From the IMG/VR virus record IMGVR_UViG_3300032931_001151, positions 1 to 64,000 of that record: a stretch of 64,000 nt of DNA. One strand, given 5' to 3'. The notes beneath the pieces are model-generated. The model searched no databases, was not told the origin of the DNA, and saw only the letters and a list, made by a program, of their open reading frames with translations. Position 1 is the first letter of the stretch, and the number at the start of each line of letters is the position of its first letter. Shown piece by piece: positions 7,515 through 51,200 of this stretch. Made by a program: the position numbers and the translations under genes.

Positions 7515-8323
7515 TTAGATGTAACCGATTTTATAACCCAAAAGTCACATGCTAAATTTGGATTTGTTATATATGAATACGGCATCCAGAAATGTCCATT
7601 TATTCCCCATTTAGGACCCCAAGAATTTCTAATTAAGAATGCTTGTTTTTCATCCGAATAACCAACCGATGTCACGGCATGTCCACCGCAATGTCCTTCG
7701 CCTGGTTGTGGCATTCTTAATATGCCGCCCTTAGACATTTCTTCACTTTCAAAATATTGATACACTTGAAACCCGAATACGAAAGGATGGCCTTGGGCTA
7801 TACAAGCCTTTAGTTCATTTATATTTGTTCCATTAAGTGATGAATACTCTATACTTTTATGTAGCAGTGCATCTTGATAGGCTTGATCTATTGGTTTTGT
7901 AGCAAATTGAGATTCAATATATGGCCAAATTGTTTCTTTACATGCACCATAGACATTGACGGCTTTTATTCCATCACGAATGCAAGCGCCGCAATCTTGA
8001 TTTATAGTTCCTTCCATCATTCTTTCATTATAGTATATGAATAAACGGGAAGGAATGAAATCTAATAATTTATTTTGAGTTATTTGATCGTATTCTATGG
8101 CAGCCGCAATAGCATTTCCAGTACAACTTCCAACTTTACCTTGATCGTAAATAGTTGGTATTACGGTAGATAGATCGGCTTTAGTTGGAACGGGGATATA
8201 TTGAGATACTTTGAACTTCTTATCTCTTGTATCTATCTTATCCTTTTTCCACCCATATACTCTCTTCGTTTCCTTTTTGAAGAGACTCTTAAGAAACTTT
8301 ACCAATTTTTTGAGTAATACCAT
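7511..8323 (-). CDS. Papain-like C1 cysteine peptidase
   Basis: DQGKVGSCTGNA (Gln, Cys), GGHAV (His), IRNSWG (Asn). Confidence 0.95.
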   Translation of the reverse strand: MVLLKKLVKFLKSLFKKETKRVYGWKKDKIDTRDKKFKVSQYIPVPTKADLSTVIPTIYDQGKVGSCTGNAIAAAIEYDQITQNKLLDFIPSRLFIYYNERMMEGTINQDCGACIRDGIKAVNVYGACKETIWPYIESQFATKPIDQAYQDALLHKSIEYSSLNGTNINELKACIAQGHPFVFGFQVYQYFESEEMSKGGILRMPQPGEGHCGGHAVTSVGYSDEKQAFLIRNSWGPKWGINGHFWMPYSYITNPNLACDFWVIKSVTSN

Positions 8324-18375: not shown

Positions 18376-18580
18376 TATTAAATTCCTTTAAAAGATAATT
18401 GACGGCGAATTCTTTATTAGAAAGTCCAACATATTTCCGAGAATCTATTGCTTCTTGCGGAACATCAATTTTAACACCATTATTATAGAAGTCAAGAGTT
18501 TGGATATCTAAGGCATTGAATTCTTTGATTATATTAAGAGCAAACTTGAGTGGCTCCAAGTCGTATTTTAGTTTATCCAC
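18368..18580 (-). CDS. Hypothetical protein (probable GTG start overlapping the radical SAM stop)
   Basis: The N-terminal extension in the track is just another frame of the GGCG tail. Confidence 0.55.
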   Translation of the reverse strand: MDKLKYDLEPLKFALNIIKEFNALDIQTLDFYNNGVKIDVPQEAIDSRKYVGLSNKEFAVNYLLKEFNNV

Positions 18581-19661
18581 ATCCACCCCCACACCCTCCA
18601 CCGCATGATGATGGCCTTGATCCACACCCACCACTATGATAATTACAAGTAGTTGACTTCGTGCTACCTAAAAGTTTCTTGTTAACTTCTTCAATTCCCG
18701 ACAACTTCTCAATTATCTTCTTATGAGAAGTTTCTTGAATCTCCTTATGTGCCTCAAATTCTTTTACGAGATTGGCCCATTTCTCATACCAAAAGGCTCC
18801 ATCGGGTGATGTAGGTTTCATATTAGTATCTACCTCTATCTTTCTAGACCAATCAGCATAAAGTTTGCCATTAGGATGGAATACAAGTTCATATAATTTG
18901 TTAAGGTATTGTGATGGTTCCGGATGTGATCCTTTCCACAATATTTGTTTATCTTTGCTAACTTGAATGGTTGTTCGACATACTGGACAATCATTACTTG
19001 ACTCAATACCCCATCTCTTCGTAAATATTTTTTCTACATTAGTTGGAGACACATCACCAGCCTCTTTACGGAATGAAATTGAACCAACTTCCAAATGTAC
19101 GAAAGCGTAGGCTATCATATGTTGAATAAATGCTTCGGTAGTTGAATCATTAATTATACAATTAATATTGAATTGATACTTATTTCCGTAATTCCTTATT
19201 ATATTCTTAATATTTGGCGTTGTTGGAACTACTTTACTCTTAAATATCTTTTGATTTTCATTATCATCAAAATGATGTCTTGAAATATTAATATGAGTAA
19301 CTACTTCCATAAGTTTCAAGTCATCTTTAAGCCAACTTTCTAATGCCGATCCATTAGTAGTTAGAACGACTCTATCCCATTTTCTATTTGAATTCTTTAT
19401 TGTATGTAGAATTGCACCAAGATGACCACTAATAGTTGGTTCCCCGCCAGAAATAGATAATGCCGGACAAATGCTATAAGGAATTTCATTAAATGCTTTA
19501 ATGAGGGATTGGATGTAATCGGAAGGTGGAACTATTTTACCGTCCTTACTATTCCAAAAACAAAACCCGCACTTAGCATTACAAAAGCCAGGTGTAATAA
19601 TGGTGAAATTAGGTTTATGACCACCTTCCGTGTATAAATCGGTTAGAATATTATATTTCAT
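18573..19661 (-). CDS. Radical SAM protein with a Gly/Cys-rich C-terminal tail
   Basis: CNAKCGFC (CX3CX2C), ISGGEPT, TTNG, NISRH; ends HSGGCGSRPSSCGGGCGGGCG. Confidence 0.9.
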   Translation of the reverse strand: MKYNILTDLYTEGGHKPNFTIITPGFCNAKCGFCFWNSKDGKIVPPSDYIQSLIKAFNEIPYSICPALSISGGEPTISGHLGAILHTIKNSNRKWDRVVLTTNGSALESWLKDDLKLMEVVTHINISRHHFDDNENQKIFKSKVVPTTPNIKNIIRNYGNKYQFNINCIINDSTTEAFIQHMIAYAFVHLEVGSISFRKEAGDVSPTNVEKIFTKRWGIESSNDCPVCRTTIQVSKDKQILWKGSHPEPSQYLNKLYELVFHPNGKLYADWSRKIEVDTNMKPTSPDGAFWYEKWANLVKEFEAHKEIQETSHKKIIEKLSGIEEVNKKLLGSTKSTTCNYHSGGCGSRPSSCGGGCGGGCG

Positions 19662-23399: not shown

Positions 23400-23668
23400 T
23401 TCAATATTCCTTTTAATTTTCTTTCATAAGATTTAATATAAGCGATTTGATCTTCTTGATCAACATCATATCGTGGCATTGGATGAAAGTCAATAGGATT
23501 CTTTCCTTGACTTATAAGTTCTTGTTTTTCCTTTGAAATTAATTCAAGTACCTTATTATATTCTTTATTGACTAACTCTATAGTAGATGGATCTTTGCAA
23601 GAACAACAATACTTAAGCAATCCAATAAGCATTTGTTGTCGTAAAATTAAATCACTTAAAGTGGCCAC
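23396..23668 (-). CDS. Hypothetical protein
   Basis: 90 aa, coupled. Confidence 0.55.
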   Translation of the reverse strand: MATLSDLILRQQMLIGLLKYCCSCKDPSTIELVNKEYNKVLELISKEKQELISQGKNPIDFHPMPRYDVDQEDQIAYIKSYERKLKGILK

Positions 23669-24833
23669 AAAACCTCTTTAAATCTTCCGTATCATTATTT
23701 AATTGTCTAAACCAAATATTAGTTAACATTGCTCGTTGAGCAACCCCAATTTTTGACTTGTCTTTGGAATTGGAAATATCTAAAATAGAAATAATCTCTT
23801 CTCCGCTAATTTTTAACTCTTTAGGGGTTATTGCGAAATCCATCATATCTTGAATAATTAATACCACTTGGGTACTAACCTCTTGAAAAACACTTAATAA
23901 AATATGTAATTGTGGTTTTAAGTTGCCTATGATAGTATGTGGTAATGCCTTATCATCTACAATTCTTCTGGCTAACTCTACCACCTTAATGCAATTAGCA
24001 TCGGGCTTCATTATATTAAAGTCTCCACCATTTAAAAAGAATGCAACAAACATCCCAATTATCTTTTCTTCACCTTTTAACGAACTTAATTTAACTTTGA
24101 TAGGATTGAAAGTATCCCCAAAAACAACTTTCCCAATAGTTAATTCGTTTAATAAGTCAATTAATATAGAGGTATTTCCTTTAGTCCATGCTTTCTTTAA
24201 CTCATCAAAGATTCTCTCACCAGAAACACTCTTTAATGTGGGTGCTAACTCCTTAATAGCCTCTTTAGTTTCTTGGGAGATAGTAAAGCCTAAACGAGAA
24301 GAAAATTGAATTGCTCTTAAAATTCTTAAACTATCCTCAGAGAACCTATCAAATGGATTCCCAACCGTTCTAATGACTTTATTCTTAATATCTTCTAATC
24401 CATTATGAGGATCAATTAAACCACTTAAGTCATTATTAATGAAATTCCTTAATGGTAATGCCATTGAATTTATCGTGAAATCCCTACGAGATAAATCTGC
24501 TTCAATAGTAGCATTTGGGTCGGTTTGAACACTAAAATCCGTATGAGAGTTACCAGTTTTAATCTCTTTGATTCTTGGAATAGCAAAGTCAAATTCTTGA
24601 CCATGTACTACACCCTTAACGATGCCAAAAGATTGACCAACTTCTCCAGCTTTACCTATCTTATTAATAGCATTAGAAATTTGCTCTAAAGTTACTTTTC
24701 TAACTAAAAAGTCAATATCTTTAGGGATAATTCCTAATATCTTATCACGAATTGGTCCACCAACAACAAAGATTTCGGCACCAACTGACTCTAAGGTGCT
24801 TAAAATCTTCTCTAAAGTTTCTTTATTATCCAT
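23652..24833 (-). CDS. cca: CCA-adding enzyme / tRNA nucleotidyltransferase (class II)
   Basis: VGGPIRD, DIDF, DLSRRDFTINSMA, FSEDSLRILRAIQFSSRL, SGERI. Confidence 0.9.
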   Translation of the reverse strand: MDNKETLEKILSTLESVGAEIFVVGGPIRDKILGIIPKDIDFLVRKVTLEQISNAINKIGKAGEVGQSFGIVKGVVHGQEFDFAIPRIKEIKTGNSHTDFSVQTDPNATIEADLSRRDFTINSMALPLRNFINNDLSGLIDPHNGLEDIKNKVIRTVGNPFDRFSEDSLRILRAIQFSSRLGFTISQETKEAIKELAPTLKSVSGERIFDELKKAWTKGNTSILIDLLNELTIGKVVFGDTFNPIKVKLSSLKGEEKIIGMFVAFFLNGGDFNIMKPDANCIKVVELARRIVDDKALPHTIIGNLKPQLHILLSVFQEVSTQVVLIIQDMMDFAITPKELKISGEEIISILDISNSKDKSKIGVAQRAMLTNIWFRQLNNDTEDLKRFCGHFK

Positions 24834-24884: not shown

Positions 24885-25124
24885 TTAATTTTTGGGATCG
24901 TCAACATCTTCGGGAAATGTAATGTAAACCCGAGTGGAACACTCTAAACAAGCATTATATCCAAGTCGGTCACTCTTACAATACATCCTTGACACATGCC
25001 CATTCTCACACCTAAACTTTACAGGTTTAGCATCTAACCATCTCTCGGGAAGTCCAAGAAACCGTTCTCCGGTTTCTTTTAAATCGGCATCAATTATTAT
25101 TTGTGGTCGCATATAATTCCTCAA
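24885..25124 (-). CDS. Small zinc-ribbon protein
   Basis: RCENGH..CLEC..TFPED. Confidence 0.6.
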   Translation of the reverse strand: MRNYMRPQIIIDADLKETGERFLGLPERWLDAKPVKFRCENGHVSRMYCKSDRLGYNACLECSTRVYITFPEDVDDPKN

Positions 25125-25531
25125 AGTAATGGTAAGTGACCGGTAATAGCATCAATGATATCCGAGTTTCCCGGACCAATAGCACAACAAGTTACTGTTT
25201 TAACTCCTTTAAACTCGGTTAACCCATTATCATATTGTATATGAAATGGTATCCCTTGTTCTTTGGCTTTTTCACAAATATCAAATATTTCACGTTCGCT
25301 ATTAACAGAAACACAAATTTTCTTATAATCGCCAAAGATCCAATTGTCTAACGGAAGGGATGACTTCTTATGAACTGTTATTGTGTAAGTATACAAATCG
25401 CCCGATTCGGATATGCTTATATTACTATAATCTAATAGTGACCACATTACAGCATGACCGGCTTGTGCTGCTATTTTTCCTTTTCGCATATTGAGATCTT
25501 TTCTCATTACAATAACTTGCTTAGTTTCCAT
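25121..25531 (-). CDS. pth2: Peptidyl-tRNA hydrolase, Pth2 family
   Basis: KQVIVMRKDLNMRKGKIAAQAGHA, KKIC, DNGLTEF, TCCAIGP, ITGHLPLL. Confidence 0.95.
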   Translation of the reverse strand: METKQVIVMRKDLNMRKGKIAAQAGHAVMWSLLDYSNISISESGDLYTYTITVHKKSSLPLDNWIFGDYKKICVSVNSEREIFDICEKAKEQGIPFHIQYDNGLTEFKGVKTVTCCAIGPGNSDIIDAITGHLPLL

Positions 25532-26034
25532 TTTTAGCCTTCTTTCTTTTTAATCTTTCAACTCTCTTTATGAACTCGGGAGAATCATCGTAATGAGGAT
25601 TATCAATTCCTTTTCTTCTATGCATTAAACATTTACGGCACATATATCTTGAGAGAGAATCGGAATTCCTCCAATTCCACCAAGATACAAAATTATCGTC
25701 AATGTATTCGTTATTCATTTATAAGTTTTTCTAGTCCAACTTTTCTCATATCATGTGCCATCATACGGTTAAGTAGTTCAAGTATTTGATCAATTATAAT
25801 ACACTCAACGTTACTTTCTTGACCATCGTATTTTTTAATCTCCTTAACATATTGCTTAATAAGTCTTTTAACCTCTTTAACTTTATCAAAATTCTTACCT
25901 TGTTTTAGTCCTTGAGGATAGAATTCAATATCTCGATTCTCTTCAAAAACCTCTTTAATCTTCTTTGGAAGTTGTTTGAAGTCGTCTTCATGGATTGTGA
26001 AGTGCATTAATTCATCTACAAAATCTTTACTCAT
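25521..26034 (-). other. Two small hypothetical CDS (25521-25718, 25711-26034)
   Basis: Coupled ORFs between pncA and pth2. Confidence 0.6.
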
Positions 26035-26630
26035 ATAATAATAATTCCTTTATCTTTCATTGATTGGATTGCTACTTCAAGAGTGCCTTTAGGAGTATCT
26101 ACGGCTCGGCAAGCCCAAGTATTCACGCTTACTTTATATCCTAGATTAACCGCATCAATAGCCGTAAAAGCAACACAATAGTCGGTGGCTAGGCCAACAA
26201 TAGTAACTTCTGTTACTCCATTTTCCTTGAGAAATGCATCAAGACCAGTAGGATTCTTACCATCATTATCAAAGAACCCGGAGTAACTATCCACGGTTGG
26301 ATCCATTCCCTTACAAAACACGAATGGAATATCAAGAAGGTCGGGATGGAATTCAGCACCACGGCTATTTTGTACACAATGGTCGGGCCAAAGAACTTGT
26401 GGCTTACCGTTTAGAGTTCCAAGAGTAAACGGGGCTACTCCTTGGGTGGAAGCAAAACTACCATGTTCTTTAGGGTGCCAATCTTGAGTCGCAACAACCA
26501 AATCCCCTTCTTTAAATGCGGCGATCATCATTGCATTAATAAGGGGTACAATTCTATCCCCCCCATTAATGGCTAGTGACCCGCTTGGACAAAAGTCATT
26601 TTGAACATCAATAATTAATAGTGCTTTCAT
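26031..26630 (-). CDS. pncA: Nicotinamidase/pyrazinamidase
   Basis: IIDVQNDF, TQDWHP..H.SF, WPDHCVQ, KG..DSYSGF, GLATDYCV. Confidence 0.95.
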   Translation of the reverse strand: MKALLIIDVQNDFCPSGSLAINGGDRIVPLINAMMIAAFKEGDLVVATQDWHPKEHGSFASTQGVAPFTLGTLNGKPQVLWPDHCVQNSRGAEFHPDLLDIPFVFCKGMDPTVDSYSGFFDNDGKNPTGLDAFLKENGVTEVTIVGLATDYCVAFTAIDAVNLGYKVSVNTWACRAVDTPKGTLEVAIQSMKDKGIIII

Positions 26631-26647: not shown

Positions 26648-26675
26648 ATTATATAAAGAATCTGCAATAAGTCAA
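26648..26675 (-). promoter_or_regulatory. Early promoter TTGACT-N16-TATAAT (pncA-pth2 operon)
   Basis: The -35 box overlaps the stop of the upstream gene. Confidence 0.8.
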
Positions 26676-27178
26676 TGATGACTTACTTTTATATGTGGAA
26701 TATGATTAAATAAATCGCCATGTTCAATTGCCGAATTTAACGGGCCATCATTATCTGAAAAATTAAGGGAAACTACAATTTTATCTTTATTTTTTTTCAT
26801 AAAATCTTTATATTTTTTCTCTATGAATTCTTCATGATCTTTTATATACTTCTCATAAGCATCTTTGTACTCTTTGGATTTATAGTCAAGCCCACTAGTA
26901 TATGTGCAATAATCCGGACCATCATCATAGTGGCCGCTTAACTCATTCTTTATTGATTCTTCATCGTTTGGCTTGGCGTCTTGAATTTCATTGTAAACTC
27001 TTTCGGCCACGTCATTTAAACTAAAACATTCCGAACTATAGCACGCCGAGTAAGCAACTTGATCTTTCTTAAAAAGTAACTTTTTAACTTCTTTAATAGT
27101 CGTTGGAAGTTTCTCTAAAGAAACAATAAAAGACGACGAACTTGAATTTGTTACAAACCCGTTACGAAATTTTGCCAT
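26672..27178 (-). CDS. FVTNSSSSSF-leader protein 4
   Basis: MAKFRNGFVTNSSSSSFIV. Confidence 0.85.
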   Translation of the reverse strand: MAKFRNGFVTNSSSSSFIVSLEKLPTTIKEVKKLLFKKDQVAYSACYSSECFSLNDVAERVYNEIQDAKPNDEESIKNELSGHYDDGPDYCTYTSGLDYKSKEYKDAYEKYIKDHEEFIEKKYKDFMKKNKDKIVVSLNFSDNDGPLNSAIEHGDLFNHIPHIKVSHH

Positions 27179-27179
27179 A

Positions 27180-27425
27180 TTATAATTCCTCTACTTTATA
27201 ATCTTTTGGGTTAATCTTTAATTTTTTGAAAAGCGTTTCAATACTATCATTTTCCATAAAAGTAGTACCTTTAAGTTCATTTTCTAAAAATGTAACTTCC
27301 CAAAAATCCCCACAAGTATTGATATATTTCAATATTTTAGTCATTTGGAGATCGGTTAGATTCTTCTTTTGTAGAATGAAACTACTTGAAGAAGAATTAG
27401 TTACAAAGTCACTTCTAAATTTCAT
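27180..27425 (-). CDS. FVTNSSSSSF-leader protein 3
   Basis: MKFRSDFVTNSSSSSFIL. Confidence 0.85.
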   Translation of the reverse strand: MKFRSDFVTNSSSSSFILQKKNLTDLQMTKILKYINTCGDFWEVTFLENELKGTTFMENDSIETLFKKLKINPKDYKVEEL

Positions 27426-27428
27426 ACA

Positions 27429-27794
27429 TTATTCCTTTATATATTTTGCAAAATCTTTATATGTTCCAAATTTCCCTTGTATTGTAGCAAGGATTGCCTC
27501 TTTTGTCAACCCTAGATCTTTCATAAGGAATTCCAAGATTGCATCTCTATCCATTTCTTTGAATTGGCAAATTGGGCAACATTTGATATCAACTTCGTAT
27601 GGATAGTCATCATTATCTTCTTTTGCTAAGTCTTCATCAATTAGATATTGTTCATCAAATGTGTGATTAGATTTACAAGTACACATTTGACAATCACTCA
27701 AAGATAGATCCATCCCCGATTCTATTCTACCGGTAACTTGGCAAATGAATGAAGATGAACTTGAATTAGTTACAAACCCGGCTCTGAATTTCAT
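27429..27794 (-). CDS. FVTNSSSSSF-leader protein 2, Cys-rich (probably metal-binding)
   Basis: MKFRAGFVTNSSSSSFICQ..CQMCTCKSNH..CCPICQ. Confidence 0.85.
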   Translation of the reverse strand: MKFRAGFVTNSSSSSFICQVTGRIESGMDLSLSDCQMCTCKSNHTFDEQYLIDEDLAKEDNDDYPYEVDIKCCPICQFKEMDRDAILEFLMKDLGLTKEAILATIQGKFGTYKDFAKYIKE

Positions 27795-27797
27795 GTA

Positions 27798-28193
27798 TTA
27801 TTCCTTTTCTAGTAGAATTATGTTTTTCCCGTCACATATATCATTCATTTGGTCATTAAGTATATCGTTATGATAACTAATGCACTTTTTGTATACCACA
27901 TACCCATCATTGATTAATTTTCTATATTTATCAATATCGGAAGTAGTCATACAAATATATTCTCTTTTTAAATAACTATTTAAGTCGGATTCAGTCGAAA
28001 ACAACTTTTCGGCCTCATGTGTATCATTACTATCTTCAAATTCAAACATTTGCTTAATAGAGTTAATAATAAACCTCTTCCAAATCTCATTGTCAACTTC
28101 AATAAACTTATCAATATTATCTAATCCACCTTTAACGGCTATAATGAAACTTGATGAACTTGAATTAGTTACAAAACCATTACGGATTTTCAT
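27798..28193 (-). CDS. FVTNSSSSSF-leader protein 1
   Basis: MKIRNGFVTNSSSSSFII; the ATG at 28193 overlaps the radical SAM stop (ATGA) after AAGGAG. Confidence 0.85.
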   Translation of the reverse strand: MKIRNGFVTNSSSSSFIIAVKGGLDNIDKFIEVDNEIWKRFIINSIKQMFEFEDSNDTHEAEKLFSTESDLNSYLKREYICMTTSDIDKYRKLINDGYVVYKKCISYHNDILNDQMNDICDGKNIILLEKE

Positions 28194-29308
28194 ATACACT
28201 CCTTATTACAAATGTTTATATCTGGAACTAGAACACAAGGCTTGCAAGTATCAATGTGGTGCTTGCACTTTTGACATTTACCAGATTCTAATCCAAATTG
28301 TTGTTTCTTCCTAAACAATTCAAATTGTAGACTCTCCCACGCATCTTCAAGAGATACATCATTTAGATTTACACCATATGCTTGTTTCTGATCAAATGAA
28401 CAAGGACAAAAAATACCATTTGGACTAATATATGCGGAGAAACATCCCGAGTCACAACTTGAGACACTTTGAGAAATAACATTCTTCATATATTTACCAA
28501 TAAACATACACGAACATGAGTCAAACCCAATCTTAAACGACAACGGTTTATCAAGCAACTCAAAAAGTTCATTCAAACTTGGTTCTTTACCGGTAATAAC
28601 ATTACTTAAATCACCTTGACCAATATTCTTATAGTTCAATATAATAAGAGCATTTACACCTTTAGGTACTTTATTCTCTTTAATAATTGAAATTAGTTCA
28701 TCAATTGTTTTATTGGATAGAACATAATGAATATTTGTGGTTACACCGGCATCAATGAATTTATTTAAAGCATTGATAGTATGATCTTGTCTCTGCCAAC
28801 TACACGCAACTGCGCCGGCATATTGTTTAGTAATTTGGACCTCTTCATCCGTTAATCCAATTCCACTTGTAGTGTAATTAGGGGCTATATGATTATCCCT
28901 ACACAACTTCATAAACTCTTTAAAGTTTTCATGTTTATTTGGGTCGCCACGACCCCCTAATGCTATTTCGTAAACCTTTCCAACACATTGACTTATGATT
29001 TTTGAAAACACATCATAAGTCATATTTGGCTCATCTTTAATAAAACCAGATTGATAACAATCAATCCCACCTTGCTTGCATACACCCCTTGCTTTACAGT
29101 GACCCATTATACCAATGTCAAGCAAGTGAGGAACCGAACTCATAAAAGGATCTTTCCCCGTATCTTTGCCATTCTCAATGATTCCACTACGGTAATAAAA
29201 CCCAGTAGTCATATTGAAGGATGACTTAAAGTTATAAATCTTGTCGTAAGAATGGATAACACCATCCTTAACAAAAGATGTAACTTTTTGGGTATCACAA
29301 AGGATCAT
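28190..29308 (-). CDS. Radical SAM protein with SPASM/twitch domain and an atypical cluster motif
   Basis: DIGIMGHCKARGVCKQGGIDCYQ (CX5CX6C), ALGGRGDP, YTTSG, GFDSC, SCDSGCFSAYISPNG..PCSF, CQKC..C..C. Confidence 0.88.
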   Translation of the reverse strand: MILCDTQKVTSFVKDGVIHSYDKIYNFKSSFNMTTGFYYRSGIIENGKDTGKDPFMSSVPHLLDIGIMGHCKARGVCKQGGIDCYQSGFIKDEPNMTYDVFSKIISQCVGKVYEIALGGRGDPNKHENFKEFMKLCRDNHIAPNYTTSGIGLTDEEVQITKQYAGAVACSWQRQDHTINALNKFIDAGVTTNIHYVLSNKTIDELISIIKENKVPKGVNALIILNYKNIGQGDLSNVITGKEPSLNELFELLDKPLSFKIGFDSCSCMFIGKYMKNVISQSVSSCDSGCFSAYISPNGIFCPCSFDQKQAYGVNLNDVSLEDAWESLQFELFRKKQQFGLESGKCQKCKHHIDTCKPCVLVPDINICNKECI

Positions 29309-30216
29309 GGAGTCCCTTCTTTTAGTACTTGAATTGTTTTATTTAGTTTATTAGTAACATTAGATAATATGGTTTGAGTTTTTCGCATTGACTCAACCTT
29401 AGTCAATCTTTCATATATATCCGACAACTCTTGAATGAGAACCTTTCTCTCCGTTTTGCTTACTAACTTATTCTCTTCAACAAATAGAATATCTTTAATT
29501 ATTTTTTTAATTCCGTCTTTATACTCCTTTAACTTAGTAACACACTCTTCATACGTGCCACGGAAAGAGCATACTTTCTCATAATTCTCTTTTGTAAAAA
29601 TATAATTTCCATTCATCTTGGCATACTTAATTCCAGAATGTGAAGCATTTTGAATATAATGACCTTTAGTTGATATTTTTTCATCATCGCTATAAAACTC
29701 AACTTCAAGTTCCTTACAAATCTCCTTTAAAGCATCTTGAGGGGAGATAGACATATTGCAAATAGGGTTATCAATTTCCCCACCCAATTGCGCCAATGGA
29801 ACGATTTCTTTATACTCCGAATAAATTACACCACTCACATTGAATGGAACATCTTCAAAAACCTCTTTATGTTGATAATGAGGTTCCCAAGTTTTAATGA
29901 ATTTCTTGTAAGCATATTCATCATCAAGGTTGTCAAACTCCCAATCTTCTTCTCCTTCATAACCTTTATTCTTTAATTCTTCACTCTCTTTTTTATATTC
30001 CATAATCATTTTAATAGACCCTTTCGGGCCATCATAATGAGTAATAGACGATATGGTAACTTTCTTAACTACTTTAATTGGAAGTATATGCAATTCATAT
30101 TCAACTGGATACCCATCACCTTTATCAATAGTGATTCTATCGTTAATAACATAGTTGCCATAATTTTTTAGAGTAAAAATGTAAGTACCCATGCGAGTCT
30201 TTAGAAAATTAATCAT
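29305..30216 (-). CDS. Hypothetical protein, first gene of the radical SAM/NSSSSS operon
   Basis: 303 aa; ATGA-coupled to the radical SAM gene. Confidence 0.75.
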   Translation of the reverse strand: MINFLKTRMGTYIFTLKNYGNYVINDRITIDKGDGYPVEYELHILPIKVVKKVTISSITHYDGPKGSIKMIMEYKKESEELKNKGYEGEEDWEFDNLDDEYAYKKFIKTWEPHYQHKEVFEDVPFNVSGVIYSEYKEIVPLAQLGGEIDNPICNMSISPQDALKEICKELEVEFYSDDEKISTKGHYIQNASHSGIKYAKMNGNYIFTKENYEKVCSFRGTYEECVTKLKEYKDGIKKIIKDILFVEENKLVSKTERKVLIQELSDIYERLTKVESMRKTQTILSNVTNKLNKTIQVLKEGTP

Positions 30217-30235
30217 TTATAGTTCCTTTAAGACT

Positions 30236-30262
30236 ATTATACGACGAATTAAGAGAAGTCAA
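30236..30262 (-). promoter_or_regulatory. Early promoter TTGACT-N15-TATAAT
   Basis: Heads the 30216-26672 operon. Confidence 0.75.
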
Positions 30263-30804
30263 GTCTCAAGGCGTCGTTTATCCGAAAAGAATTGTTGAAT
30301 TACCGTATCGTGGTTAAAAGCAAATTCGTAGTTACCCAATTGATCTAAAGTAGTCCATTTAGCATCGGCTACCTCGTTTGGCTCAGCGTCATTATTGGGA
30401 ATTAATTTAGGTAATTCAGTTACTTCAAGAACCTTAGCATATCTCAAAGTTACATTTTGACGGTTCTCATCCGGAGCAGTTTTGACGAACCACGGTTGAG
30501 TATCGTTATCAAATTTGCAATAATCATCCAAGTTGATTCCAATCTCTTCCCAAAGTTCTCTTTTAACGGCTTCTGGCCCAGATTCCGAAAAATCCAAATA
30601 TCCGCAAGGAAGGCACCATAGACCTTGCTTGTCTAATCCGGGGGCGGTTCCCCTCTTTTCAATAGCAATATAGAATTTATCGTCATTTGCTCTATATGCT
30701 ACAAGAACCATTACAACTGCTACCGATCGAGATAGCCAAATGGTTCTACCATCGGTAGTAGTTGTGCATTCATTTGGGATGTTCTTAAATATTGGAATAG
30801 TCAT
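30259..30804 (-). CDS. Nudix hydrolase
   Basis: Nudix box GYLDFSESGPEAVKRELWEEIG; FAFNH. Confidence 0.92.
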   Translation of the reverse strand: MTIPIFKNIPNECTTTTDGRTIWLSRSVAVVMVLVAYRANDDKFYIAIEKRGTAPGLDKQGLWCLPCGYLDFSESGPEAVKRELWEEIGINLDDYCKFDNDTQPWFVKTAPDENRQNVTLRYAKVLEVTELPKLIPNNDAEPNEVADAKWTTLDQLGNYEFAFNHDTVIQQFFSDKRRLET

Positions 30805-31787: not shown

Positions 31788-32740
31788 AGTACTTTCTTAA
31801 TAGCATTAAAGTATCCATCAAGCATCTCATCAAACTTATCATTTGGGTCAAATGTCTTTAATGACTTTCTAATATCATCGAATTTACTTAAATAGTTCTT
31901 AAATCCTTGTTCTAGTTGATACTCGGTCAAGTGTGGAACATATTCTATAAAATCAAAATTCTCAATTTCGGGAATAGGAACTCCGTAGTTTCCAACCATC
32001 TCATGCACTCCACCAGATTGTGCATAAAGAATCGGCAAACCACAACTAATGGCTTGAGGGACTGTTTTTGTTGCCGCATCTCTATAAGATAGGTTAACAA
32101 ATCCATCAGAAGAATTAAATATATTAGCCATTTCTTTAGGATCTGAAATATAGCCATATTTAGTTACATTACTTGAAGTTCTAATAAAATAACTATTTTT
32201 TCCTATCAAATTTAGAAGAAATTGATCTTTAAACATGGAAGCCAACTTAATAATACTCAAGTATCTCTTTTCTTCTCTATCCCAATCAGTAGCACTAGCA
32301 CATAATACAAGTTTTTTATTTAATGGGTATTCAAACCTACGAAATACTTTAGGATCTACCCAATGTCTAACTACACAATAATCCTTTAGGGGTTGATTAT
32401 AAGTATTGAAGAAACTATCACGGCTATAATTAGTTATAAAGATTACATTATCCGCTTGTTGAGCTGCCCTATTTAACGGGTGGTTTCTTTGAACAAAATC
32501 TTTATGCCAAAATACCCCATCCATTCTCTTTACTAGTGGTTTTTTTAAATCTAGAATATATTTTGGAAATACATCGTTAGTAATAATTACATCCGCAATA
32601 TGTGGATCATTGACAAATGTAAATCCATAATACTCACAATTTTCGTGTAAGTATCTCATAACATCATTAACAAGTGGGCCACCACCATTTCTATGTGGTG
32701 GCCTTTCACTTGAATTTGAGCAATCAAATATTTTTATCAT
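31784..32740 (-). CDS. Glycosyltransferase family 4 (GT-B)
   Basis: VKRMDG, ADNVIFITNYS, K-R motif EKRY, SYRDAATKTVPQAISCGLPILYAQSGGVHE. Confidence 0.85.
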   Translation of the reverse strand: MIKIFDCSNSSERPPHRNGGGPLVNDVMRYLHENCEYYGFTFVNDPHIADVIITNDVFPKYILDLKKPLVKRMDGVFWHKDFVQRNHPLNRAAQQADNVIFITNYSRDSFFNTYNQPLKDYCVVRHWVDPKVFRRFEYPLNKKLVLCASATDWDREEKRYLSIIKLASMFKDQFLLNLIGKNSYFIRTSSNVTKYGYISDPKEMANIFNSSDGFVNLSYRDAATKTVPQAISCGLPILYAQSGGVHEMVGNYGVPIPEIENFDFIEYVPHLTEYQLEQGFKNYLSKFDDIRKSLKTFDPNDKFDEMLDGYFNAIKKVL

Positions 32741-33695
32741 GAATACTCTTGAATTTATTATTGTATTCCGAACAAACATCCAAACATTGACGAGAACAAA
32801 TAGGGTCTTTATGTGTATCGTGATTTAGTCCCCATTCAACTCTCTCTTGTCGCATATTAGGACCAATCTTGCCGATTGGATTGCCATGCTCTCTCATATA
32901 GATTACACATGGGAAATGATAATCCCCACATACAACACTATCATCTTGAATTAGCCAGCAACGATGCGAATCGCCATCCTTTAATCCCCTAACATTAATA
33001 TCATTCTTAATGTTATTAACACGATACTTAAGAATTGGATGTGCATTAAGAATATCCTCGGAAATTCCAATAACACCTTTCAATACACTATTAAATTGTG
33101 CAGCGGAAATAATACGAATATCTGCAACCCCAAGACTATGAGCATATTCAACAATTCCTTGAATTTCCCCAACATTGGTTTCGGTTAAAACAACTCCTAC
33201 GGTAACATAAGTTCTTGAAGCAAGATACTTAATGTTATTTGAAATGGTATTAAACTTCCCAGATACTCCAGCCATAGCGTCGGCAAATGAAGAACAACAA
33301 GCATCTAGAGAAATTGAAAAGTCATTTGCTCCTGCATCAACTAATTTTTGATACATTTCCGTTGATGTGGAACCATTTGAAGAAATAGCAATATGCTCAA
33401 CATTGTTCTTTTTACAATGTTCAACTAATTCAATCAATCGAGGATATATGGTTGGTTCTCCACCAGAAAAACGAACATTCTTAAGTCCATCTTTAATCCA
33501 ATCATTTAGAACAAACATTGCTTTATCAAAATCCATATCTCCAAGGCAATCATTACGAAGCCCACGGCAATAAGGACATTTAAAATTGCAACGATTAGTC
33601 AAAATCATTTCAGTTCTATACATTGGCGAGGTTGGACTAGCCAACCTTGCTCTCTCATCCGATAGGGTATAGAATCCAATATTCTCAAGTTTCAT
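32724..33695 (-). CDS. Radical SAM protein with C-terminal Cys cluster (twitch-like)
   Basis: CNFKCPYC, RFSGGEPT, ISSNG, SISLD; CWL..FPCVIY..CSRQCLDVC. Confidence 0.92.
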   Translation of the reverse strand: MKLENIGFYTLSDERARLASPTSPMYRTEMILTNRCNFKCPYCRGLRNDCLGDMDFDKAMFVLNDWIKDGLKNVRFSGGEPTIYPRLIELVEHCKKNNVEHIAISSNGSTSTEMYQKLVDAGANDFSISLDACCSSFADAMAGVSGKFNTISNNIKYLASRTYVTVGVVLTETNVGEIQGIVEYAHSLGVADIRIISAAQFNSVLKGVIGISEDILNAHPILKYRVNNIKNDINVRGLKDGDSHRCWLIQDDSVVCGDYHFPCVIYMREHGNPIGKIGPNMRQERVEWGLNHDTHKDPICSRQCLDVCSEYNNKFKSIHDKNI

Positions 33696-43163: not shown

Positions 43164-43182
43164 CTATTAATTGGAGACGAAA

Positions 43183-46100
43183 ATGCCAGCCATTAAAATA
43201 GATCAAGTAACTTTTGCTAAAAAAGACACTTATAATAGTGTCCTCCCAAATGAGTTATCTATAATTGCCACGTCGGATAATAAATTAAAATATATAGATT
43301 CTCTAAACAATTCACATGAATTAATGTCTAATACATCCGTGGCTCCTTTAACTGGTAGTTTACAATATCAAATAAATGCATTATCAGATAGTAATACGGA
43401 TTCAACTTCAATAACGGAAGATACTATGACAAACACTATTTTAGAGTTAAATAGAATTGGTTCTATGCCGGATGTAGCATCAACTTTGTTAATTGGATCC
43501 GGAACTACCGATTTCTCCCCAACTACCTCCTCTACGGTATTAACTGTCGGCGGAAAATCAAAGTTGCCTGGGAGAATTTATATAGAAAATAGATCTTTCA
43601 TGAATACCGATCAAACACAATATTTAAATGGTGTTAATACTCCATGGAATGTATGGAATGAATTCGGCTCAATATCTAACACTTATGATCATGATTGGTG
43701 GGATGCAGAATTTGCAAGGTTAGTAAATCGTGGAATTAATGCTACTCGTGTGTGGATAAATGATAGTCCAGGAAATGAAGGTGTAACTCTAAATTCGGAT
43801 GGCTCATGCAACCCACCAACCGCAAAATTTTGGCAAGATGTTGATGATTTAATGGCCCTTGCCGCAACTCATAAAATATTTGTTATGCCAACTGTTATGT
43901 CGTTTGATCATTTTAGTTGGAATAATACGGGATCCGAACGTTATCACTTTATGATGGGTAAAGAAAGTAATGTACAAAGTTTTATTGATAACTTTTTGGT
44001 CCCTTTAGCTGAAAGATATATTGACAATCCTTGGGTTTGGTCTATTGATTTAGGAAACGAAATTGACGGTATGCCAGAAAATATGGAGACATCTACTCCT
44101 AGAACCGTAACAGCAACTCCGGTTGGTGGCGGATCAAAAGTTGTAAATTTTAGTGATAGATTATCGGACTATGTTGTAGGTACACGTTTATGGGTTAATG
44201 GAACCGACATGGGGTTAGTCACAATAAGAAATAGCGATACACAATGTACCGCAACCAATGCATATTCGGGGGCATCTCAAACCTTTGGATTATATGGTTG
44301 GGGATTTTACGGTATGAATTGGGCGACCTTACAAAGATATGCTGCAATGGCTTCTAAAAGTATACATTCGTTAGACATATCACCTCTCGTGACAATCGGA
44401 ATGCAATCAATTAAATATGTCTCTGGCAATTATAGTGGAGATTATTTCTCCGATACTATTCTTTTGGGCTACACAAATAGCCCGAAATCAAAATTAGACT
44501 ACCACCAAATTCATTGGTATAATTGGGCCGAGCCTTGGTATAGACTTATGCTATCACCAACTGCACACGGACTTTCAGTAAAGCCTGCGGTAATGGGAGA
44601 ATTTCCAGCCGCTTGGGCTAACATGAATGTACCAGGAGTGTATACGTGGTATCCACAAACATATTTCTCTTTAGGACAATATGTTTATGGTAAAGATGAT
44701 GGCCTATTATATGTATGCTCTCAAGCCGGCTTAAGTGGACCTGTTAATGGTGTAGCCGGTGGAGATAGAGGGCCTGGCGGTGGCGGGAATGGTATAACAG
44801 ACGGTTCCGCTAAATGGGATCATTGTGTAAATGATAGTACTTGGAAATCTGAAACAAGTTATAGTGTTTATAATATGATTATTGGAGATCAAGGAACTAA
44901 AACGTATATTTGCACGGAAGCGGGAACGTCGGCGGCTAATAGTAGCGGACCATATGGAACAACTCCACCAGTAGACGGGACTGTCACTTGGGAATTCGTA
45001 AGAAATGTGGTAAAAAATGAAAAAGTAGTTTTGGATTTCTTCATTTCTAGTGGATGGGCTGGAGCAATGCCGTGGAATAGTAATATGTTTAGTACAAATG
45101 GCGGATTATATGAAGTAAATTTACAAAATAAAATTTTTGACAATTGGGGTGCATTGACAGACTACTATGTTAATAGCGAAATTTTAAATGATGGCTACAA
45201 AGTATATAGGTGTTTAGCCCAAGGAAAGAGTGCGGCTAGCGGCGGCCCAACCGGAACAGGTCAATCAATATCTGATGGTGGAGTTACATGGAGCTATACA
45301 AGAGAAATATCTGGAAATCCCGCATGGACTACTTTTGGATTGGCAATTAAAGAAACATCCGATGAGAATGTGGTATCTATATATCCAAATACTAATATAA
45401 CACCCGATAACTCAGGAAAATCAATACGCCAAACTATGAGTAGAGCATGGTATAAATCCGGATTTGACATGCAATCCGCACAGGTATTTAAATTTGATAA
45501 GCCTTTAGATAGTACAATTCAAAATGTTGGATTTTTTGATGATGATGACGGTTATTTTTTAAGTTATAATAATGGTGATTTGCAAATAGGCGTTAGATCA
45601 AATGGATCTTCTTTACTTGTTGATAGATCTAATTGGAATATTGACAAGTTTGATGGGTCAGGCCCATCTACATTAACACTAGATATAACTGGAACCATGA
45701 ATACCGTGTTAATAAATTCGGGATGGATACATGGCGGAAAAAATTTGGTAGGATTTATTTTTAATAACAAAAAGTATTGGGCACATGAGTTTGAACATTC
45801 GTCAATATATCCCTCAAATCCGAATTTACCGTTAAGATGGGAAATCGAGGCGACGGCCCCAATTGATGAGACGAGAGCTATTGAATCATTTATGGGATAT
45901 GTTACTACTCAAAATAACTATAATATTACACAAAAAAGAACTAATGGTAGAGCAGACTATGCTATTCAACTTAATGGCGGTATTACACAAGAGGCTATAT
46001 CAATTAGAATTCCATCCACATATCAAAAATATAGTACTCTAAGACCAATTAGAATAAAAGTATTGGATACCACCGGGTCCGAATTCCAAGTATTCCATTG

Positions 46101-46380
46101 GAAGTTAATTTTAAATCCATATGAAACCGGTACGGGGGCTTGGATACAATCTTCAAATGGCATATCCGAATATAATTTAACTCGGTCTACGGAACAAGGT
46201 ACTGGAATAGTCATAACTCAAGGATATAATAGGGGAGATTGCGATGTTGTTCTTGAAAATCTTCCATATTTGGGGGCAACTATAGATGGTACTAGTGATG
46301 TATATAGTCTACAAATAACTAACCTAACTCAATCCTCAACTTATTACTTCGTGAGTATGGATTGGGAAGAAATTAAATAA
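43183..46380 (+). CDS. Virion/tail-associated protein with a GH5-like glycoside hydrolase and CBM5/12-like repeats
   Basis: GVNTPW, GINATRVW, acid/base GNEID, HWY, nucleophile VMGEF, GAMPW; three W..Y...Y.C..AG.S...GP.G...DG...W repeats; start at the ATG 43183 after GGAG. Confidence 0.8.
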   Translation: MPAIKIDQVTFAKKDTYNSVLPNELSIIATSDNKLKYIDSLNNSHELMSNTSVAPLTGSLQYQINALSDSNTDSTSITEDTMTNTILELNRIGSMPDVASTLLIGSGTTDFSPTTSSTVLTVGGKSKLPGRIYIENRSFMNTDQTQYLNGVNTPWNVWNEFGSISNTYDHDWWDAEFARLVNRGINATRVWINDSPGNEGVTLNSDGSCNPPTAKFWQDVDDLMALAATHKIFVMPTVMSFDHFSWNNTGSERYHFMMGKESNVQSFIDNFLVPLAERYIDNPWVWSIDLGNEIDGMPENMETSTPRTVTATPVGGGSKVVNFSDRLSDYVVGTRLWVNGTDMGLVTIRNSDTQCTATNAYSGASQTFGLYGWGFYGMNWATLQRYAAMASKSIHSLDISPLVTIGMQSIKYVSGNYSGDYFSDTILLGYTNSPKSKLDYHQIHWYNWAEPWYRLMLSPTAHGLSVKPAVMGEFPAAWANMNVPGVYTWYPQTYFSLGQYVYGKDDGLLYVCSQAGLSGPVNGVAGGDRGPGGGGNGITDGSAKWDHCVNDSTWKSETSYSVYNMIIGDQGTKTYICTEAGTSAANSSGPYGTTPPVDGTVTWEFVRNVVKNEKVVLDFFISSGWAGAMPWNSNMFSTNGGLYEVNLQNKIFDNWGALTDYYVNSEILNDGYKVYRCLAQGKSAASGGPTGTGQSISDGGVTWSYTREISGNPAWTTFGLAIKETSDENVVSIYPNTNITPDNSGKSIRQTMSRAWYKSGFDMQSAQVFKFDKPLDSTIQNVGFFDDDDGYFLSYNNGDLQIGVRSNGSSLLVDRSNWNIDKFDGSGPSTLTLDITGTMNTVLINSGWIHGGKNLVGFIFNNKKYWAHEFEHSSIYPSNPNLPLRWEIEATAPIDETRAIESFMGYVTTQNNYNITQKRTNGRADYAIQLNGGITQEAISIRIPSTYQKYSTLRPIRIKVLDTTGSEFQVFHWKLILNPYETGTGAWIQSSNGISEYNLTRSTEQGTGIVITQGYNRGDCDVVLENLPYLGATIDGTSDVYSLQITNLTQSSTYYFVSMDWEEIK

Positions 46381-48288: not shown

Positions 48289-51200
48289 ATGACTATAATA
48301 AATACGGTACAATATGCGTTTGACGGATCTAGAACTTTATTAGACACAACTTGCTATAGTTTTCTATCCTATAGCACGGAAGACGGATATGCCGATTACA
48401 CGGAAGAGTCAAAAACTGGATATGGCGCTGGGGATTATATAATTTTTAATAATGTTGTAGGATCCGAGTGGTATATAGGATCGGATGTTTCATTTCAATC
48501 TTTATATATGGCACTTAATACTATAGGAGTAAAGGGAACTGGAAATATAGTTTGGGAATACGCATCCGGCCCAAGCACTTGGTCTACCTTAACGATGGCT
48601 GGTTCTGGAACAGCCGATTTAACATCCCCAACTTATGAGGCGGCATTAGATTGGGATACTCCTAGCGATTGGGTTGATTCTACTGTTAATGAAATATCGG
48701 CAAGATGGATTAGATGCAGAATGACCTCTACATATACTACTCCACCAGCTATAATATTTGCTAGTATTGGTAGAACTACTTATTGGTCTAAAACTATAGA
48801 TATTCCATATACTTCAATAAATTGGCAATCTACATATTTAGATTGGAGTTTATATTTAAATAATAATTATGGGGCTATTAGATTCGTTGCGGTATATGCT
48901 AGATTGGGCGGAACTGGATCTTGGGTTAGATTAACTAGTCCAAGTACGGGATATACCGGAACAAATAATCAAATGTCCATAAAAAATATAATTGATTTAT
49001 ATCCACTATTCAAATTAAATTGGATTGCGGGAGATACTCAACTATTAGAAATTAGATTTGCTATAACCGCCATTTCTTCTAATAATGGATCGGATTACGT
49101 AACAGAGTTAGCAGGAAGATTAAATCTAACCTATCAATACGATGCGACGGAAAACAACGATACAATAATAAAAACTATTAGAATTCCGTTGAAAAGTTTA
49201 CCAAATGGAATATCAAATATAGATCAATTAGTTGATACTATTCCCGCATTAAATACATTTTTGCCAGAATCAAGTAAAATAATAAAAGATTGGTGGATAG
49301 AAGTAGAAGGAAATAATTGTAACAACGAATCTGATAATTCGGTATACGGATTACAAGCACACATTGATAATCTATCTAGTGAGTATTTAATAAATTGTGT
49401 AAATACTTCTTTTAGTAGTTCTTATCATTGGTCGGTATATAGTTTAAATAGTTTAGATTTAGATACTTCTAATTCTCATTCTTTCTATCTTATGGCAACC
49501 GAGCCGAATAACTTATTTAATACGGTCAATAGTGTCGTTTATGTTACATATACTTATAGTAAATCGTTATCTACTACCGTATTACAATCCTTAATAATAC
49601 CACTTGGATATGCTTCAACTCCATTAAGAACTTCAGATGCTATTAATAGTGATGGACAGCAATTCAACTTAACTAGACCTATATGGATAGCAGAGCCTGG
49701 AAATATAACTATACAAAAATCGGGCATAAGAATAACTTGCGAAGAACTAACTTATGCCTCAAATGCACAAGTATATGCAATACAAACTGTTGGAGATTCC
49801 GCATTTACCGAGTATCAAATCGGAACTAGAGGGAACCCGGCTGGACAAATTAGTATCATGCATCCGCTAGATAATCTAAGTCTTATTCATGGTAAAAATT
49901 ATATTGGATTAACCATGTATTCTTTATATAATGACTTCGTTAGTAGAGGTAGAAGTCATGTCTTATACTTAAATTATACATCAAATGTAGACCCAAAAGG
50001 AGAATGGAGGCATAATAAAACTATTATGTCATTATTAATGAATATGAGTTATGTTGAAGGAACGTGGGCAAATTATGCAAATTTTTGTAGCATTGGAACA
50101 TCCGAACAAAGTAACTATTTAATAAACGACGCTTCTTTAATGATATACGAAACTGGCCAAGTATCTCAACCATTCAATTTATATGCTACTATATACAATG
50201 ATACAAGCCAACATACCGCATTACAATGGAGTATGGAACATAGTGGACCAATAAAGTTCTTAACTACGGAACATACAAGTCAATTCTATGTTCCAGTTCT
50301 TGAATGGTTTTCTCAAATTAGTGATGGAATAAAACCTATAAGTAATGTAAGTGGAAAAATGAAACCATATATAGGAAATGGATATGGAATCATAGCAACC
50401 CAAAACTCATTAAAAAGTTTAATTGGCATGACAACTTTCCATAGTATATCAACGGATATTTCGGGGCGCATGTATAGAATGCCCGGAACACCAAATGAAG
50501 TTATATTAATTTCATCGGATGTACAAGATTTAGGTTGTATAACTAAACAAGCCACCATTAATAGTGATGGTACATATAGCATTTCATGGCCAGATGACTC
50601 TGCCGATATCGCTATATTGGCACACTATTCTGGATCGGCATATGCTATAACTCAAAGAAATAAATCGTCTATACCAAAGTATATCCCACCCGCACAACCA
50701 CTACCATTTAAAATGCTAATTGATACCACTAAAGATGGATCGGCAACAAATCACTTCATACTACCGTTGGATGGTGTATCTACATATAACTTTGATATAG
50801 ATTGGGGCGACTCAAATATACAAACAATAACATCAAATACATCTATTGATCATACATATTCCGCTCCTGGGGTATATACTATTAGCATCACCGAAAATGT
50901 AGTAGGCGGATTCCCAACTATCTACTTCAATAATATGGGCGATTGTCTCAAGCTTATGCAGATTTCTCAATGGGGTACTAATAAGTGGGTATCACTCATT
51001 AGATCGTTTAATGGATGTAGTAATATGAATATCGTCGCCACCGATGTAGCGACTGCTAATACTAGTTCTATTACTAGTTTAAGTTATGCATGGCGTAATT
51101 GTTCCGGGTTGACTTCGTTCCCACTCATCAATACATCAAATGTTACGGACTTTGAAGGTGCGTGGTGGAATTGTTCCGGGTTGACTTCGTTCCCACTCAT

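Follow-up and report, generated by a model that had tools for sequence, protein, structure and literature searches.

The close examination of a phage operon has led us to a pairing of one enzyme with one short N-terminal tag that proves to be very widespread, and for which no description was found in Pfam, NCBIfam, PADLOC or the literature. In a 64,000-nucleotide stretch of viral DNA (positions 1 to 64,000 of IMGVR_UViG_3300032931_001151, hereafter the window), one radical SAM/SPASM enzyme is encoded with four unrelated proteins which all start with the same 16-residue serine-run tag, and the same pairing of enzyme and tag occurs in phages, bacteria and archaea. Based on our results, we infer that the enzyme is a dedicated maturase that recognises the tag and modifies its serine run, most likely in the setting of phage-host conflict. 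We give this reading a probability of about 0.6, as gene linkage demonstrates functional coupling and not that the tag is the substrate, and the chemistry remains an inference without biochemical or mass-spectrometry support.

Results

Six tightly packed genes lie on the minus strand between 30216 and 26672, as the sequence-only reading had placed them. The first (30216-29305) encodes a 303-aa protein of unknown function which overlaps the start of the enzyme gene as ATGA. It has only a weak hit to phrog_17099 and, although it is conserved at 75% identity in the syntenic relative L333, it is absent from all other loci, and is probably not a core part of the system. The second gene (29308-28190) encodes the 372-aa radical SAM enzyme, and the four tagged proteins, which we call clients, follow at 28193-27798 (131 aa), 27794-27429 (121 aa), 27425-27180 (81 aa) and 27178-26672 (168 aa). 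For the 131-aa client the open reading frame list offers a GTG start at 28199, but the ATG at 28193 gives the family-typical N-terminus and overlaps the stop codon of the enzyme as ATGA. The remaining gaps between genes are 1-3 nt. The sequence-only reading had also proposed that one transcription unit is bounded by promoters, and here our data are weaker. The candidate at the 3' end of the operon (26675-26648, minus strand), ahead of a nicotinamidase-like gene, is TTGACT-16-TATAAT with 11 of 12 matches, whereas the candidate upstream of the 303-aa gene (30262-30233, minus strand) matches only 9 of 12 in the scan (TTGACT/AATAGT), or TTGACT-15-TATAAT by eye. The region holds no more promoter-like sites than shuffled sequence (22 against 23.2 +/- 4.5) and an equally good site lies inside the 121-aa gene, so that the boundaries of the transcription unit are plausible but not shown.

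The four clients start M-(A)-K-[IF]-R-x-[GD]-F-V-T-N-S-S-S-S-S-F, with the tag encoded at 28193-28146, 27794-27747, 27425-27378 and 27178-27128, respectively. The back-translated F-V-[ST]-N-S5-F pattern occurs 4 times in the window against 0.00 expected in 100 shuffles. We confirmed that the serine runs use different mixes of TCN and AGY codons, and the syntenic relative L333 keeps the tag through synonymous changes. Between the window and L333 the enzyme is 90% identical and the clients 56-75%, in line with purifying selection. The claim that the four proteins share no similarity beyond about residue 18 holds at profile level, as hhalign and jackhmmer place them in disjoint families. The 131-aa client belongs to a family of ~125-140 aa that is the commonest neighbour of the enzyme in bacteria (hhalign probability 92-94% to clusters 2 and 5; 83 jackhmmer hits in 82 loci). 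The Cys-rich, zinc-ribbon-like 121-aa client and the 81-aa client belong to families that recur in 60 and 67 loci. The 168-aa client matches phrog_7397 over its full length (E 1.4e-13) and has 60 homologues, 50 of which were aligned to reveal an invariant S-D-N-D-G ... E-H-G ... S-H-H end. Its AF2 model is a predicted alpha/beta domain (pLDDT 90.9) without fold match in PDB or BFVD. Each of the four families is usually present once per locus, and the clients are not freely interchangeable, contrary to the sequence-only reading.

The enzyme carries C71-X5-C77-X6-C84, and these cysteines are invariant in 42 of 42 homologues. Most of the family has CX3-to-n-CX2C followed by Y-K, while the clade of the window has CX5-7CX6C followed by Y-Q. 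Pfam SPASM (PF13186) matches residues 285-349 at 30.2 bits against a cut-off of 21.5 (E 5.6e-7), and the protein also matches phrog_7293. Seven C-terminal cysteines (C265, C285, C303, C345, C348, C358 and C367) are each conserved in 59-60 of 60 members of the subclade, with C285-X12-G-X4-C303 followed by C345-X2-C348 ... C358 and C367, in agreement with the SPASM pattern for two auxiliary clusters. The window has CX2CX6CX2C where its relatives have CX2CX5CX3C. Importantly, in the wider family only four of these cysteines are invariant, and the chemistry may thus differ between clades. The AF2 model (pLDDT 90, pTM 0.90) is a predicted partial TIM barrel; all 50 listed Foldseek matches are radical SAM enzymes, and the best are the peptide- and protein-modifying SPASM/twitch enzymes SuiB (E 7.5e-14), PqqE, anSME (anSMEcpe, E 1.5e-10), CteB, SkfB and BtrN.

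The sequence-only reading had proposed to ask whether tag genes co-occur with this radical SAM subfamily, and the answer is a strong yes in both directions. Of 80 viral loci fetched by the enzyme alone, 74 carry 1-7 tag genes; 231 of 232 of these genes are on the strand of the enzyme and nearly all lie downstream. Four of the 6 exceptions have under 0.5 kb of downstream flank and the other two have 3.2-3.7 kb. Conversely, the enzyme is found in 44 of 114 viral loci and in 82 of 117 bacterial and archaeal loci fetched by the tag alone, in the latter usually directly adjacent, and no other neighbour recurs as widely. However, 10 of 20 viral tag-gene clusters with at least 3 kb of flank on both sides have no enzyme nearby, and in phage KP27 the enzyme lies 19 kb from the tag genes, so that clients can be encoded far from the enzyme. 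Interestingly, the cluster loop of the enzyme covaries with the tag: enzymes with a CX2C-YK loop go with tags carrying S9 (38 against 0) and G6, and those with a CX6C-YQ loop, as in the window, go with T9 (153 against 3) and mostly D6, although this covariation is confounded by shared ancestry.

A profile search found about 25,500 tag-bearing protein clusters (50% identity, E <= 1e-3), and in the listed hits that were checked the tag is at residue 1. Asn sits at residue 10 in 393 of 416 proteins, position 6 is G in 57% and D in 41%, and internal copies of the tag are nearly always preceded by Met. Beyond the tag we found more than 100 unrelated sequence groups, including LRR (LRR_5), TIR (TIR_2), HIRAN, BRCT and zinc-ribbon domains, in proteins with a median length of about 130 aa and reaching 1814 aa. 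The tag is found on chromosome-sized contigs of Veillonella and Sporomusa, in many other bacteria, and in archaea; the system is not specific to phages, contrary to the sequence-only reading. The four bacterial gene neighbourhoods examined lie beside defence- or immunity-type genes, and in one of them the client carries a TIR domain.

In the model of the 168-aa client, tag residues 1-11 have pLDDT below 50 while the rest scores 85-98, and residues 14-21, with most of the serine run, form the first core beta-strand. The conservation of residues 1-11 is therefore not explained by packing within the domain. One could argue that the tag is an ordinary structural or catalytic element of one very divergent fold, with the enzyme as a mere syntenic neighbour: the 168-aa family has invariant D, H, H and E residues that could form a site together with the serines, and several families end in acidic D-x-D-G-like motifs. 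We consider this very unlikely, as profile-profile comparison finds no relation between most families, the tag precedes LRR, TIR, HIRAN and BRCT domains that fold on their own, and the linkage to the enzyme across phages, bacteria and archaea goes far beyond synteny.

Discussion

Our favoured hypothesis is that one radical SAM/SPASM enzyme recognises the tag, M-K-hydrophobic-R-x-[G/D]-[F/Y]-V-[S/T]-N-S-S-S-S-S-[F/Y], on otherwise unrelated proteins and modifies it after translation. We infer that the first ~10 residues, free and flexible, would dock on the enzyme as an extended strand, possibly on its N-terminal beta-domain (residues 1-50), and that this would place the N-S-S-S(-S-S) stretch between the SAM cluster and the auxiliary clusters. 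The 5'-deoxyadenosyl radical would then abstract a hydrogen from a Ser or Thr, with either oxidation (anSME/BtrN-like, Ser to aldehyde) or a crosslink to a flanking aromatic residue as the outcome. As part of the serine run is predicted to be the first core strand, modification would have to precede or accompany folding. In this T4-like phage the enzyme would serve four clients from four recurrent families, expressed as one tightly coupled early-type gene block.

Other roles for the tag are possible but less likely. The tag could be a docking peptide that tethers sensor or adaptor proteins to the enzyme, which would then act on something else, for example a nucleotide as viperin does, or a host or phage protein chosen by the adaptor. 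Many clients are indeed binding modules, the bacterial loci lie among defence genes, bacterial homologues of the enzyme give superfamily-level hits to prokaryotic viperin models (PADLOC pVip, E 4e-14), and viperins are among the structural matches at about 1e-8. Nevertheless, SuiB, PqqE and anSME match better, a SPASM domain with its full Cys set is typical of peptide- and protein-modifying enzymes and is lacking in viperins, and a docking peptide would not obviously need five invariant serines. This alternative is the strongest, though still improbable. The tag could also be a homotypic assembly or signalling strand through which proteins encoded side by side co-assemble, by the same logic as the shared short motifs and effector-associated domains of other conflict systems, with the enzyme as co-effector or regulator. 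The sharing of a short, strand-prone motif of hydrophobic-polar-hydrophobic make-up by neighbouring genes in conflict islands, the predicted strand at residues 14-21, and the presence of one copy of each of several families per locus would fit this idea. We find it unlikely, as the enzyme itself lacks the tag, 86 of the 117 bacterial and archaeal loci have only one tagged protein and hence no partner to assemble with, and the near-invariance of 12 of 16 residues and the fixed distance from Met1 go beyond what strand pairing needs. Finally, the tag could be a targeting signal, either for packaging into the capsid, as in T4-like phages, where polymorphic small internal proteins appear to share a short N-terminal sequence, or for non-classical export of the LRR proteins. 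BspA-type LRR proteins are usually surface proteins, yet here they carry the tag where a signal peptide would normally sit, although signal peptides were not tested for. This possibility is remote: the tag occurs in bacterial chromosomes and archaea, is linked to a radical SAM enzyme and not to a protease, a capsid gene or a transporter, has no hydrophobic signal-peptide core, and is encoded in an early-type block rather than among structural genes.

Importantly, there are clear differences between this pairing and the systems closest to it. Like anSME, the enzyme would act on a short motif near the N-terminus of full-size proteins, but the anSME target motif (C/S)-x-(P/A)-x-R is absent, as the tag consensus has no Pro or Arg after the serines; no sulfatase domain was found in 81 long clients or in the four of the window; no anSME model is among the NCBIfam hits; and the motif sits at the extreme N-terminus ahead of unrelated domains. 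The RiPP maturases of SuiB/SuiA, PqqE/PqqA, CteB and SkfB match best in predicted fold (SkfB also by sequence profile, 4e-6), and there too a conserved N-terminal recognition segment comes before a variable part and several substrate genes follow the enzyme. Here, however, the clients are proteins of 81 to 1814 aa rather than short precursor peptides with leader and core, and no leader protease or exporter recurs in the loci. No RRE/PqqD domain was found in the enzyme; the only hit, on the 168-aa client, is sub-threshold (E 0.0077, 17 bits against a cut-off of 23.4) and is not backed by the fold search. In the FXSXX-COOH (Fxs) and other peptide-processing modules of conflict systems (Kaur et al. 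2020, PMC7159879), a radical SAM/SPASM enzyme is likewise tied to a short terminal motif on variable proteins, but that motif is C-terminal, differs in sequence and belongs to vWA-MoxR ternary systems, whose partners do not occur here, and no FxsB model is among the listed NCBIfam hits. QhpD, which seems to crosslink a protein subunit (QhpC, in quinohemoprotein amine dehydrogenase maturation) rather than a peptide that is later released, has a single dedicated client and makes Cys-to-Asp/Glu thioethers, whereas the tag has no conserved Cys. A glycyl-radical enzyme and its activase do not fit either, as position 6 is not an invariant Gly, the motif is N-terminal and the enzyme has a SPASM domain. 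In sortase/LPXTG and exosortase/PEP-CTERM the logic is the same, with a short terminal tag on many unrelated proteins read by one dedicated enzyme that is often encoded nearby, but those tags are C-terminal and the enzymes are transpeptidases acting at the membrane, while here the enzyme is a cytoplasmic radical SAM protein.

It is about as likely as not that the pairing represents a general, previously unrecognised protein-maturation pathway, in which the tag marks tens of thousands of otherwise unrelated proteins for new radical chemistry on a Ser/Thr stretch, used by both sides of phage-host conflict. If the enzyme does modify the tag, this is a large new class of radical SAM protein substrates, in which the target would be whole folded proteins marked by a portable N-terminal tag rather than short peptides, and the tag might also serve as a compact, genetically encodable handle with a matching enzyme. 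The tag-bearing clusters carry it without any annotation. Such a modification would name and connect thousands of "hypothetical" genes in large phages and in bacterial defence islands, and would also point to new serine chemistry.

Results

Organization and conservation of the operon

The six genes of the operon are packed head to tail on the minus strand and encode a 303-aa protein of unknown function (30216-29305), the 372-aa radical SAM enzyme (29308-28190), and proteins of 131 aa (m131, 28193-27798), 121 aa (m121, Cys-rich, 27794-27429), 81 aa (m81, 27425-27180) and 168 aa (m168, 27178-26672). The first two junctions are ATGA overlaps and the other gaps are 1-3 nt. The last four genes begin MKIRNGFVTNSSSSSF, MKFRAGFVTNSSSSSF, MKFRSDFVTNSSSSSF and MAKFRNGFVTNSSSSSF, and the back-translated core of this motif occurs four times in the window against none expected in shuffles. 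The serine codons differ between copies, exactly as described in the sequence-only reading. The two promoter-like sites which that reading placed at the boundaries of the transcription unit also exist, but such sites are no more frequent here than in shuffled sequence, so the unit boundaries are only plausible. A further strong promoter-like site (TTGACA-17-TACAAT with an upstream TG, 11 of 12 matches) lies inside the 121-aa client gene (27481-27509, minus strand) and could drive the last two clients separately.

The window comes from a T4-like phage. It encodes an RnlA-like RNA ligase, a DNA ligase and a CCA-adding enzyme, has about 33% G+C, and has no near-identical DNA or close DNA relative among GenBank phages. 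The closest relative is a 386-kb metagenomic contig (L333) that carries the same block, namely NUDIX, 303 aa, enzyme, 132, 125, 81 and 168 aa, and an isochorismatase-type gene. The enzyme is 90% identical there and the clients 56-75%, and synonymous changes fall inside the tag codons while the tag peptide is kept. The genes are thus real and under selection. The 303-aa gene was tested as a possible core component, but it recurs only in this closest relative.

In the window, the operon is flanked by a NUDIX hydrolase (30259-30804, minus strand) and an isochorismatase/nicotinamidase-type gene (26031-26630, minus strand), followed by a PTH2 peptidyl-tRNA hydrolase (25121-25531, minus strand) and the CCA-adding enzyme (23652-24833, minus strand). 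In other tag loci, NAMPT, NAD synthase and RlaP-type genes recur nearby. A link to NAD metabolism is possible. Interestingly, the same 64 kb contain two further radical SAM genes (32724-33695 and 18573-19661, both on the minus strand; Pfam PF04055, E 1.5e-20 and 5.4e-11), neither of which has a SPASM hit, and three oxygen-sensitive enzymes in one window suggest a phage of an anaerobic host. The window also encodes a papain-family cysteine protease (Peptidase_C1, E 7.8e-14; 7511-8323, minus strand), which is unusual for a phage, and a 1785-aa ORF (48289-53646, plus strand) with six repeated stretches matching phrog_34853 (unknown function), near a 1069-aa virion structural protein (43171-46380).

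Co-occurrence of the tag and the enzyme

The sequence-only reading had proposed that co-occurrence of the motif with this radical SAM subfamily be tested, and we did so in several ways. Starting from the tag in viral contigs, we found 261 N-terminal tag genes, in arrays of up to about six and with a median length of 130 aa. A homologue of the window's enzyme was present in 44 of 114 such loci, with the tag genes always on its strand and mostly just downstream of it, and it was the only widely recurrent neighbour. Starting instead from the enzyme alone in viral contigs, 74 of 80 loci carry 1-7 tag genes, 231 of 232 of them on the same strand. Of the six loci without tag genes, four have under 0.5 kb of downstream flank and the other two have 3.2-3.7 kb. 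Importantly, the system is not confined to viruses. In cellular genomes the same pattern hit at least 120 stretches, including Clostridia, Veillonella, Sporomusa, Flavobacteriia, Pirellulales, candidate phyla, Methanoculleus and Asgard archaea, and 82 of 117 loci have the enzyme in the same locus, usually adjacent.

Nevertheless, linkage is not absolute. Among viral tag clusters with at least 3 kb on both sides, 10 of 20 have the enzyme in view, and in Klebsiella phage KP27 the two tag genes lie about 19 kb from the enzyme gene (L001 4004-4519 and 7904-8374; L002 3962-5131, the stretches concerned), so linkage can be at genome level only. In some phages, homing endonuclease genes sit at or inside the enzyme gene: next to it on the opposite strand in Vibrio phage D479 (locus L003, 6091-6819) and at the region of Klebsiella phage Kpn35c1 where the gene is split in two (PMC9960720).

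Sequence of the tag

To define the tag, ORFs of enzyme-anchored loci were screened only for an N-terminal run of four or more Ser/Thr, and about 150 of the 160 that passed read M-K-x-R-x-[DG]-[FY]-V-T-N-S-S-S-S-[S/A/C]-[FY]. Asn is residue 10 in 393 of 416 proteins. The R-x-G-F start of the tag was considered as a glycyl-radical motif, which was rejected because Gly alternates with Asp. When two copies occur in one predicted protein (P0171, P0176, P0177, P0178, P0180, P0182, P0188 and P0192), the inner copy is usually preceded by Met, so these look like neighbouring tag genes fused by a missing or reassigned stop codon, or by gene calling. A profile built from 49 diverse tagged proteins was searched against 1.84 billion representatives and found 25,500 with E <= 1e-3 and 1,072 with E <= 1e-10. 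Of the best 149 hits read back, 146 carry Asn at residue 10, but only these listed hits could be inspected, so the total rests on HMMER's statistics for a serine-rich profile. The enzyme's cluster-loop type covaries with the tag: CX2C-YK enzymes go with G6 and S9 (38 against 0), and CX6C-YQ enzymes, as in the window, go with T9 (153 against 3) and mostly D6. This fits an interacting pair, although it is confounded by shared ancestry.

Diversity of the client proteins

With the tag removed, the proteins fall into more than 100 BLAST groups, of which profile-profile comparison joins only a few. The window's four belong to four disjoint, recurrent families, each usually present once per locus: m131 to the ~125-140-aa family that is the usual enzyme neighbour in bacteria (82 loci), m121 to a zinc-ribbon-like family (60 loci), m81 to a family that recurs in 67 loci and m168 to one that recurs in 86 loci. 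We looked for a universal core client, but no single client family is present in all loci. Long clients carry BspA-type LRR (24 of 81 scanned), HIRAN, BRCT, TIR and FNIP domains. These domain fusions, together with the distribution across bacteria and archaea, largely exclude two rival explanations, namely that the tag is an ordinary strand of one fold or that it is a targeting signal. None of the clients tested against Pfam, NCBIfam or PADLOC matched a family that covers the tag, and public names are "hypothetical protein".

The 168-aa family has invariant N11, S12-S16, F17, D142, H153 and H168, and a conserved S-D-N-D-G ... E-H-G ... S-H-H end. Its AF2 model is confident (pLDDT 90.9) except for residues 1-11, which score below 50, and residues 14-21, covering serines 3-5 of the run plus F-I-V-S-L, form the first strand of a small sheet in this model. 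A sequence profile of the family against PDB gave only chance hits such as apolipoprotein, and fold searches of the model against PDB and BFVD gave nothing below E 0.09. A weak PqqD hit on m168 raised the possibility of a peptide-binding chaperone, but it is below threshold and has no structural support.

Features of the enzyme

C71, C77 and C84 of the enzyme are invariant. Most of the family reads CX3-to-n-CX2C-Y-K, while the window's clade reads CX5-7CX6C-Y-Q. The subclade conserves seven C-terminal Cys in a SPASM pattern, of which the wider family conserves only four. The AF2 model (pLDDT 90) has a beta-rich N-terminal domain (residues 1-50), the barrel, and the Cys-rich tail. Its best structural matches are SuiB, PqqE, anSMEcpe, CteB, BtrN, TigE, SkfB and ChlB, with viperins ranking lower, and bacterial homologues gave only superfamily-level viperin hits in PADLOC. 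By sequence profile the nearest solved proteins are SkfB and BtrN, a pentatricopeptide-repeat hit to the enzyme profile being a repeat artefact. No NCBIfam equivalog comes near its cut-off.

Genomic context in bacteria

Veillonella and Sporomusa chromosomes share a six-gene cassette (loci L323 5606-12394 and L326 5648-12349) composed of a metallo-beta-lactamase fold, a ~925-aa protein (named "serine protease" by some sources), a ~136-aa protein, a tagged 137-138-aa protein, the enzyme and a ~302-aa protein (PF21648 in Sporomusa). It sits beside SUKH, DMP19, Macro, SIR2 or SocA-type genes and is an uncharacterised candidate conflict system. A module of a 124-aa client, enzyme and HTH lies in an island with serine recombinases, AAA_21+RloB and PycTM. 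In another locus (L332 171-3417), the enzyme is directly followed by a 743-aa tagged protein with a TIR domain, and a ThsA_Macro gene and a NUDIX gene lie next to them.

Discussion

The system described here works like a radical SAM/SPASM maturase with linked substrates, as known from anSME-sulfatase, RiPP systems and the Fxs modules (PMC7159879), yet it fails the defining features of each of these families. It is large and unannotated, it is directly testable, and our literature searches found no description of the motif or of the system.

Our data fit a dedicated maturase that reads a portable N-terminal tag, in which the flexible first ten residues would serve recognition and the invariant Asn-Ser run would be the site of chemistry. 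Besides the two explanations largely excluded by the client data, we considered that the tag could serve for docking only, or that it could be a strand for homotypic assembly. Three chemistries, none of which is shown, are compatible with the fold family. The first is oxidation of Ser or Thr, as in anSME and BtrN. The second is a crosslink between an aromatic residue and Ser/Thr; residues 7 and 16 are aromatic, and residue 9 covaries with the enzyme. The third is epimerisation. Finally, the settings of the bacterial loci suggest, by inference, a role in conflict systems.
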